From assembly GCA_002104945.1 (NCBI GenBank), contig MCFH01000010.1, positions 372,001 through 436,000 of the forward strand: a DNA stretch of 64,000 bases, written 5' to 3'. Source of the DNA: Piromyces finnis finn (taxonomy: Eukaryota > Fungi > Neocallimastigomycota). Positions 57,012 through 58,900 of the stretch are shown here, one piece after another. A program made the translations under genes and the position numbers. The notes beneath the pieces are model-generated. The model was not told the origin of the DNA and did not search any database. It saw nothing but the letters and a program-made list of their open reading frames with translations. Numbering within the stretch: the stretch's first letter is position 1; every line of letters begins with the position of its first letter.

Positions 57012-58900
57012 ATGAGTGATTCAAAAGGAAAAAATCCAGAGGATTCAGTTAATGAATCATTAACCCAAGAAGAATTTAATGAATTATATGGTGAAGATGA
57101 TAATGAAGAAGTATTTGTTGATATCAATGATTTAATTGAATCAGGAACAAAATTCTTTGCATTACAACAATATGATATGGCTATTGATCGTTATAGTAAT
57201 GCTCTAAACATATTGTAAATATATCAATATACTTTAATATATAAATAATGAAAAATCTTCAAATTTTAAATGAAATATTAATTTAATATTAATTTAAATT
57301 TACTGTTTTTCTTTCCTCTAATTTTATTTTATACTTCTTCTTCGTATTTTTTTTTTATTTATTTTCTACCAATTTAATTATTAAAAGAGTAAACCAATAT
57401 GGTGAATTTTCACCAAATTGTGCTCAAGTATATTATTTATATGGTCAAACACTTTTACAAAAAGCTATTCGTCAAAGTGATGTTTTTGGTGAAAAAATGG
57501 GAGAAAATGTTCAAGTTCAAGAAAAATCAAGTACATAGAAGCACAAATGAAATAATATAATTATCTTTATTATCATTTCAATAATTTCAATTTACTTTAA
57601 TTTTATATACTAATTCATTTAAATAATTTAAATGTTAAAATTGCAATAAATAAAAAAAAAAAAATTACTTATTTTTAAATAATAAAAGATGATATTATAC
57701 CAAAAAAATCAATGAATCGTTTTTCATTCCAAGGTGATGAAGAAGACGAAGAAGAAAATGAAGAACAAGAAGAAGACTTATTTGAATCAGCATGGCAAAT
57801 GTTAGATTTATGTCGTATTATTTACGAAAAAGATACTACAGTTGAAGGTCAAAAGAAATTAGGTGATGTCATTAAAACCCTTGGTGATGTTCATTTAGAA
57901 GATGGTAATATAAAAAATGAATTTTATGTGTTTAGATAAAAGTTTTTTAGTACATAAAATCATTGATTTTAAAATTATTCATATTTTCAAACTTTATATA
58001 TTAAGGTAACTATCTTGAAGCTGCGAAATATTATGAAGATGGACTTGAAATCTTAGAAAAAGTATTAGAACCAGACAATAGAACATTGGCTGAAGCATAT
58101 CCTTAATTATTATTATTATTATTATTATTATTATTGTTGTTGTTGTTGTTGTTGTTGTTAATGTTAATGTTATTTTATATAAAATTTTATTTTAAACTAA
58201 TTAAAAATTATAATTCCTTAATTCAATTTTTTTTTATTTAATATATTATTTATAAAAATTCAATATTTTTAATTTGATGTAAACACTCATTATAAATTAG
58301 CATTAGCATTAGAATGTAATGAAGAAGGTGAAAAAGCTGTTACTCATATCAAAAAGGCAATTTTAGTGTTTAAGAAAAAATTAGAGTCATTAGAAAAAAT
58401 GAATAGTGATAATGGTAAAGGTAAAAAAGCTGCCGACACAGAAACTATTAATGCTCAAGAAGAAATTGAAGGAATTAAAGAACTTTTAGTTGATATGAAG
58501 AAAAAGGTTTTTTTTTTTTTTTTTTTAAGAAAATATGAAATTTAATGAAATGAAATATATTATGGAATAATATGTTAATTTTTAATTTCATTTTATTTTA
58601 AAAAATAATGATAATGAATTACCCAATATTATAAAGTTGGCAGAATTAAAGGGAAGTTTGAAAAAGAATCTTGATGTAAAGCAAATGTTATCTAATTCAT
58701 TCAAGCAATCAACTAATGTTAATACTTCTCAACCTACTCAAATTAATGATTTATCTAGTTTAATTAAAAAGAGAAAAGTAGATGATACAAAAGAAAATAA
58801 GGAAAAATCTGATGATAAAAAAGAAGTAAAAGAACCAGAGGTAAAAAAAGTAAAAGTTAATGAGGAATCAAAAGAAGAAAAGGGAAAGGAAGCTCTATAA
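57012..58900 (+). CDS. NASP: H3-H4 histone chaperone NASP/Hif1/Sim3 (SHNi-TPR)
   Basis: TPR1 (GTKFFALQQYDMAIDRYSNAL), VYYLYGQTLL, acidic insert, DLFESAWQMLDLCR, LGDVHLED.NY, RTLAEAHYKLALALE and a C-terminal LIKKRK NLS. The model requires an AT-AC intron. Confidence 0.92.
58097..58286 (+). other. U12-type (minor spliceosome) AT-AC intron
   Basis: 5' splice site ATATCCTTAA at 58097, TTCCTTAAT at 58214-58222 and 3' AC at 58285-58286. Removal restores GCT|CAT = LAEAHYKL in frame. Confidence 0.88.

Follow-up and report, generated by a model that had tools for sequence, protein, structure and literature searches.

The window analysed here, a 64,000-nt stretch of the Piromyces finnis genome (assembly GCA_002104945.1, contig MCFH01000010.1, positions 372,001 to 436,000 of the forward strand), contains a NASP/Sim3/Hif1-like gene for a histone chaperone of the SHNi-TPR type, in which six exons are separated by five introns (Table 1). 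Introns 1–3 and 5 are all GT-AG, and the exon limits agree with transcript alignments; the statement in an initial annotation of this DNA that the other introns are GT-AG therefore holds for the remaining four introns of the gene. The fourth intron, located between exons 4 and 5, is almost certainly a genuine U12-type (minor-spliceosome) AT-AC intron. This assignment is based on its sequence signals, on a junction that is required by homology, on sister-taxon RNA spliced at the orthologous junction, and on four minor small nuclear RNA (snRNA) genes in the genome. Exon 4 ends with ...TTGGCTGAAGC (also given as ...GCTGAAGC) at position 58096, the intron starts with ATATCCTTAA and terminates with ...GTAAACAC, whose CAC closes at 58286, and exon 5 begins with TCATTATAAA at 58287. 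The flanking translations, ...EPDNRTLAE from exon 4 and HYKLALALECNEEGEK... (HYKLALALE...) from exon 5, are linked by the split codon GC/T for Ala. Read-through from exon 4 meets a TAA stop codon at 58102–58104. No AG dinucleotide is present within the intron, and only three AC dinucleotides occur, ending 89, 2, and 0 nt from the intron end. The nearby GT/GC-AG pair that could have replaced the proposed boundaries does not exist in frame, and the earlier claim that the reading frame can be joined only through the AT-AC intron was borne out by direct reading and by homology.

The 5' splice site ATATCCTT conforms to the U12-type sequence /RTATCCTT(T), and four other contig sets retain it as ATATCCTTT. 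RTATCCTT is not enriched in the window, with 10 occurrences found against 8.2 expected; being at chance frequency, the motif derives its weight from its exact position at the sole junction that homology requires. The AT-AC termini and the YAC 3' end are likewise those of U12-type introns, and the orthologous introns terminate with TAC/ and CAC/. The distant branch motif, the degenerate motif near the 3' end, and the (ATT)n(GTT)n run were all found where the initial annotation had placed them. The last of these, an (ATT)10(GTT)8 microsatellite, was seen in this genome only: it is missing from the orthologous introns of three related taxa, and the alignment has a gap there in L031, L036, and L037.

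The junction is defined by homology on both sides. Exon 3 aligns to the human NASP chain (7v1k_A, E 2e-5 to 7e-5) through residue 127, and exon 5, for which human NASP is the top match (E 0.07), aligns from residue 160 (HYQLGLAY). The intervening residues 128–159 are filled by the 29 residues that exon 4 encodes, preceded by D and the split-codon G and followed by the split-codon A. As these amount to exactly 32 residues, no gap is left at the junction. The Arabidopsis chain 7w5m_A is colinear too, with residue 29 of exon 4 falling on residue 173 and residue 2 of exon 5 (Y2) on residue 176, and the alignment of the orthologous protein P0001 to NASP is ungapped across the junction. P0001 and a further ortholog, P0093, are encoded by uninterrupted 1149-nt open reading frames (ORFs) on 14 short contigs (L007–L020), which come from JGI samples and from sequencing runs assembled by Logan. 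Since these contigs contain none of the five introns, they were taken as spliced transcripts. The sister-taxon transcripts align to positions 58005–58096 and then directly to 58286/58287, with about 83–90% nucleotide identity between the sister-taxon exons and the window. Three of them (L012, L013, and L020) match most exons of the genomic metagenome contig L031 at 100% identity and read GCTGAAGC/TCATTAC across the join. The intron removed corresponds to L031:1963–2117, a 155-nt segment with the sequence ATATCCTTTA...GGAATAAATAC (ending AATAC). This comparison directly shows that a sister taxon splices out the orthologous AT-AC intron at the same codon position. A third taxon carries a 164-nt intron, ATATCCTTTT...ATAAACAC (ending AACAC), at L036/L037:2321–2484. 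In a fourth (L021 and L035), GCTGAAGC/ATATCCTTTACC is found at the contig end, and the transcript-derived protein P0105 reads ALAEAHYK. The junction 58096^58287, which the initial annotation had proposed to verify in RNA, is thus required by homology, and its orthologous AT-AC counterpart is used in sister-taxon RNA. The comparison of intron positions that it had also suggested placed the AT-AC intron in at least four anaerobic-fungus taxa and in neither of the two other fungal NASP orthologs examined (GCA_025677805.1 and GCA_025677815.1), which have no intron at this site, unlike P. finnis. On this distribution, the intron cannot be called ancient, nor can it be called a recent gain.

The public model of the gene is BCR36DRAFT_581635 (P0103), and the 378 residues read from the six exons equal P0103 at all but one residue. 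The exons were searched separately, and whole-protein comparisons were made with the natural proteins P0001 and P0103 in place of a joined coding sequence. P0001 (382 aa), obtained in the search with exon 3, shares 90% identity across that exon and reads ...EPENRTLAEAHYKLALALE. Its likeness to the NASP/Sim3/Hif1 chaperones lies in the matches to Arabidopsis NASP-like 7w5m (E 4.5e-30) and human NASP (about 1e-25) across the TPR region. The homology to NASP spans the TPR domain with its interrupted acidic TPR2, and the acidic stretch DEEDEEENEEQEED is located in exon 3. The difference from these chaperones is that the PF10516 SHNi-TPR profile, with a cut-off of 21 bits, reaches only 18.3 bits in P0001 and 16.3 bits in P0093. 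More distant fungal homologs have precomputed PF10516 matches, and one of them is named HAT1-interacting factor 1. Pfam scans performed exon by exon gave weak TPR matches only, because single exons are too short. The base composition of the window ranges from 13 to 29% G+C. Intron 3 (57905–58005, GT-AG, following ...GDVHLEDG/) seems to occur widely; numerous homologous ORF fragments of other fungi stop directly after GDVSLE(S/T)G.

The genome was searched for the minor snRNAs U11, U12, U4atac, and U6atac, as the initial annotation had suggested, and all four are present. U12 and U6atac score above their Rfam gathering thresholds, and U4atac and U11 fall just below theirs. U12 retains AUGAGUAAGGA and the Sm site. 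The Rfam match for U11 seemed to be devoid of the GGG of the 5' splice site-binding end, and the 5' motif AAAAAGGGCTTATG was recovered 120 nt upstream of the match, at L002:1380. The resulting U11 RNA (L002:1380–1615, equal to C152:317393–317628 on the + strand) appears to be about 236 nt long and has the canonical 5' end AAAAAGGGCUUAUG. An AU-rich insertion of ~120 nt separates this end from the conserved core, and the Rfam model aligns the last 115 nt only; the score is just sub-threshold because the insertion hides the canonical 5' end AAAAAGGGC. In the predicted fold (z -5.25), the 5' end is single-stranded and the Sm site is free; a GCUUAUG/CGUGAGC helix closes the structure, which also includes the conserved GGAAUCGAUAUCAAGAGAUUUCG hairpin and a terminal one. 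A SNORD14-like C/D box snoRNA (L002:2162–2325, - strand) is encoded about 550 nt downstream of U11; it contains a 73-nt insertion and scores 52 bits against a gathering threshold of 64. Stem II of the U4atac/U6atac pair is complementary by eye, with CGUCCUUAUCU pairing with AGAUAAGGACG. U6atac is single-copy in the genome and reads GAGCCGAGAGA, differing at 3 positions from the Rfam consensus GAAAGGAGAGA. The minor-specific snRNP proteins were weakly probed, with PF16021, PF18036, and the CHHC finger; PF18036, which we take to be linked to SNRNP25, gave one match at 35 bits. The presence of a minor spliceosome in this fungus, deduced in the initial annotation, is correct and not new: according to Larue & Roy 2023 (PMC10639083), minor introns and minor snRNAs occur in P. 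finnis and Neocallimastix californiae. The organism and the intron class are the same as in our analysis, and our Rfam searches reproduce the snRNA calls. The searched passages of that paper provide no per-intron detail for P. finnis and no distances from the branch site to the 3' splice site for the clade, and they describe neither the NASP intron nor its distant branch motif nor the 2-nt error of the public model. Relative to this published record, the NASP intron is one more verified minor intron.

Table 1. Features of the NASP-like gene, its AT-AC intron, and the minor snRNA genes. Positions are those of the window unless a contig is given.
Feature	Position	Strand	Remarks
NASP/Sim3/Hif1-like SHNi-TPR histone-chaperone gene	57012–58900	+	6 exons, 378 codons
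Exon 1	57012–57214	+	read directly
Exon 2	57388–57530	+	read directly
Exon 3	57689–57904	+	read directly
Exon 4	58006–58096	+	split-codon ..G/NYLEAAKYYEDGLEILEKVLEPDNRTLAE, then GC of split Ala codon
AT-AC intron, almost certainly U12-type	58097–58286	+	190 nt, phase 2
5' splice site ATATCCTT	58097–58104	+	consensus /RTATCCTT; complementary to U11 5' end AAAAAGGGC
(ATT)10(GTT)8 microsatellite	58106–58159	+	(ATT)10 58106–58135, (GTT)8 58136–58159
Distant consensus branch site TTCCTTAAT(TC), predicted	58214–58224	+	branch A 58221, 65 nt from 3' splice site
Degenerate branch-like motif TTTTTAAT	58266–58273	+	A 58272, 14 nt from 3' splice site
3' splice site CAC/	58284–58286	+	first YAC past distant branch site; decoy AAAC ends at 58284
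Exon 5	58287–58506	+	T of Ala codon, then HYKLALALECNEEGEK...DMKKK
Exon 6	58637–58900	+	read directly
U12	C189:428380–428555	-	66.6 bits; Rfam gathering 53
U6atac	C112:211500–211648	+	52.1 bits; Rfam gathering 33
U4atac	C90:253883–254011	+	49.2 bits; Rfam gathering 53 (4 bits under)
U11	C152:317514–317628	+	38.2 bits; Rfam gathering 39 (1 bit under)

The intron contains a single consensus branch site, TTCCTTAAT at 58214–58222, which is U12-complementary and UCCUUAAC-like as in other U12-type introns. The corresponding pattern TTCCTTAAY is expected just 0.005 times per intron of this size (190 nt). Every 12-mer of the intron was scored for pairing with AAUGAGUAAGGAUAA, a segment of P. finnis U12. 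The best duplex, at -9.0 kcal/mol versus -5.9 kcal/mol for the next site, was that of the distant motif, UCCUUAAUUC. In the orthologs, the distant motif ranks best in L037 (-6.5) and second in L031 (-4.9), where it is 0.3 kcal/mol behind an overlapping site. Its counterpart there (TCTTTAAT; kept as TCTTTAATTC) is located at 75 nt in L031 and at 77 nt in L037. In the three taxa, the consensus branch site and the 3' splice site are thus 65, 75, and 77 nt apart, outside the 10–20 nt (optimum 11–13) reported for minor introns, a range that rests on functional work summarised in a human-focused review (PMC8199999). In this respect, the intron is an atypical member of the U12 type and is not excluded from the class. 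In all three taxa, the stretch from the distant motif to the 3' splice site in use is free of YAC and YAG, and AAC provides the only decoys. The microsatellite is located 5' of the distant motif and therefore does not create the long spacer. An RNA structure connecting the distant site with the 3' splice site was considered and rejected, as four spacers (z -0.36, 0.07, -0.86, and +1.05) folded no better than shuffled sequences. The canonical U12-type AT-AC introns of animals, plants, Rhizopus, and Phytophthora have the consensus sequences /RTATCCTTT and UCCUUAACU (PMC2846911, PMC8199999). The NASP intron resembles them in the ATATCCTT 5' splice site, the AT-AC termini, the YAC 3' end, the non-zero phase (2), the consensus U12-complementary branch motif, and the four minor snRNAs encoded in the genome. 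In contrast to them, its branch motif lies 65 nt away, beyond the interval of -40 to -5, the only one in which one published classification method scans for branch sites (PMC2846911).

Considered as a whole, the locus is very probably explained best by a U12-type AT-AC intron, for which a distant-branch mechanism is proposed, and the distant motif TTCCTTAAT is predicted, with somewhat better than even confidence, to be the actual branch site. In this mechanism, the U11 5' end AAAAAGGGC would pair with ATATCCTT, and U12 (..AUGAGUAAGGA..) would pair with UCCUUA[A]UUC at 58215–58224, bulging A58221 as the branch point. In the second step, exon 4 would be joined past the first downstream YAC (CAC, 58286), 65 nt from the branch point. 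The spacer crossed in this way is AU-rich, with no AG and no other YAC.

In support of the minor-splicing machinery, ATATCCTT followed by TTCCTTAAY is more frequent across the genome than in the reversed control. By the gap between the 5' splice site and the branch site, 15 loci were found at a gap of 10–70 (3 in the reversed control), 22 at a gap of 71–131, which includes the NASP intron (5 in the control), and 13 at a gap of 132–192 (8 in the control). About 11 of the 15 pattern loci examined at a gap of 10–70 look like real AT-AC introns; a locus was regarded as credible when a long, GC-richer open frame lies upstream, the read-through meets an early stop, and an in-frame YAC is followed by a long open frame. 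This sample of about 11 introns is biased towards short introns. A 235-nt AT-AC intron, L076 (C124, about 498041–498275, - strand), contains three copies of TTCCTTAAY, and only the last copy is at the canonical distance, about 10 nt before the TAC 3' end. An unbiased scan of 264 kb, covering the window and 200 kb of contig C2, yielded two convincing AT-AC introns, that of the NASP-like gene and L051:7022–7161 (C2:7022–7161, + strand). The latter is a putative AT-AC intron of 140 nt in phase 1, with its boundaries deduced from open frames only. Its TCCTTAAT motif is positioned 63 nt before the TAC end, the intervening sequence is free of AC and AG, and its 3' end has no branch-like motif nearby. 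Accordingly, the branch distances in the sample comprise two distant cases (the NASP intron and L051:7022) versus about 11 short-range ones.

Several observations weigh against the reading of the NASP intron as a U12-type intron with a distant branch site. The junction in P. finnis itself is derived from homology and from sister-taxon RNA. The 5' splice site-pairing box of U6atac is GCCGA, not AAGGA; the possibility that this box is a lineage-specific anomaly was ruled out, since 13 metagenomic contigs (37–46% G+C) share the GCC variant in an otherwise canonical U6atac, which makes it a natural variant. Among the minor-specific proteins, PDCD7 (PF16021) was not found in a search whose control was silent too, and the zf-U11-48K CHHC finger gave one match for a domain that is non-specific. 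The remaining observations concern the branch site. In the about 11 AT-AC introns described above, the consensus branch site is 10–37 nt from the inferred 3' splice site, which indicates that the machinery normally works at short range. In addition, a T-rich motif resembling a branch point sequence is found at exactly 14 nt in the three orthologs (TTTTTAAT, TTTTTGAT, and ATTTTAAT), and the last ~40 nt of the intron, its best-conserved part besides the 5' splice site, are well conserved across them.

These features raise the alternative that the same U12-type intron uses the near motif TTTTTAAT as its branch point, with A58272 placed 14 nt ahead of the 3' splice site. Pairing with U12 would then consist largely of G-U wobbles, and the distant TTCCTTAAT would be a relic or an auxiliary U12-binding site. 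We consider this alternative possible and distinctly the less likely of the two. The textbook distance, which fits the published optimum of 11–13 nt and range of 10–20 nt (PMC8199999), the identical spacing in three orthologs, the conservation of the terminal segment, and the short distances in other AT-AC introns of the genome keep it alive. However, the U12 duplex of the near motif is weak, at about -3.5 kcal/mol against -9.0 kcal/mol for the distant site, and the motif reads TTTTTGAT in L031. TTTTTAAT is also commonplace in this AT-rich genome, occurring at 8.3e-4 per nt, or 0.014 per 17-nt window, while an accidental consensus TTCCTTAAY would seldom arise at the frequency given above. Furthermore, the second distant-branch intron, L051:7022–7161, has no near motif.

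The placement of the intron ends in the public model differs from the AT-AC junction by 2 nt. P0103 reads LAETHYK, in which Thr218 corresponds to the codon ACT at 58285–58287. This implies an intron at 58095–58284 with GC..AC termini, equivalent to the AT-AC intron slid 2 nt upstream with the frame kept. The initial annotation had anticipated that gene predictors would truncate or frameshift this gene; the public model does neither, and shifts both intron ends 2 nt upstream instead. It is highly improbable that the model is right, in which case the mRNA would read GAA/ACT, giving GAAGCTCAT at the junction versus GAAACTCAT under the AT-AC join. Although the NCBI/JGI protein is in frame with ACT, GC..AC is no known splice-site pair, and the consensus ATATCCTT begins exactly 2 nt past the intron start of the model. 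Alignment of 11 homologs with P0103 shows Ala at the junction residue in 10 and Leu in the other, P0005, and the six closest relatives (short transcript-like contigs) all have Ala. Moreover, the comparison of the sister-taxon transcript with its genome displays the AT-AC join directly. From the sequence comparison, we conclude that BCR36DRAFT_581635 mis-calls residue 218, T for A, as a result of the AT-AC ends having gone unrecognised. Least probable of all is that no minor intron exists and that the segment is a U2-type non-canonical intron, an assembly artefact, or part of a pseudogene: the chance frequency of RTATCCTT in the window would agree with this, but the AG-free intron offers no in-frame GT/GC-AG pair, the first AGs (58299/58300, 58305/58306, and 58311/58312) need a phase-1 donor while the sole nearby exonic GT (58062) is in phase 0, independent assemblies of relatives retain ATATCCTT and the AC terminus, which are spliced in RNA, the NASP-like gene is intact and conserved, and the sister-taxon transcript/genome AT-AC join already contradicts it.

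Sister-taxon RNA and a comparison of three taxa make the NASP intron a well-documented case of a sole consensus U12 branch site 65–77 nt from the 3' splice site. The recovery of U11 despite its ~120-nt insertion also calls for caution in surveys that record snRNAs as present or absent. The minor spliceosome of anaerobic gut fungi may no longer couple the 3' splice site strictly to a branch point 10–20 nt away, a proposal that we rate as evenly balanced. U12 would then bind a consensus branch site, with the first YAC or YAG downstream serving as the 3' end, even at 60–80 nt or more. Such a long-range choice of the 3' end would be possible because these extremely AT-rich introns hold almost no AC or AG. 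Since distant-branch introns lie outside the window of -40 to -5 (PMC2846911), they could be under-counted or mis-modelled. If branch mapping confirms the distant site, the distance constraint on minor introns (PMC8199999) would fail in this lineage, and minor-intron classifiers would need wider branch-site windows for AT-rich genomes.

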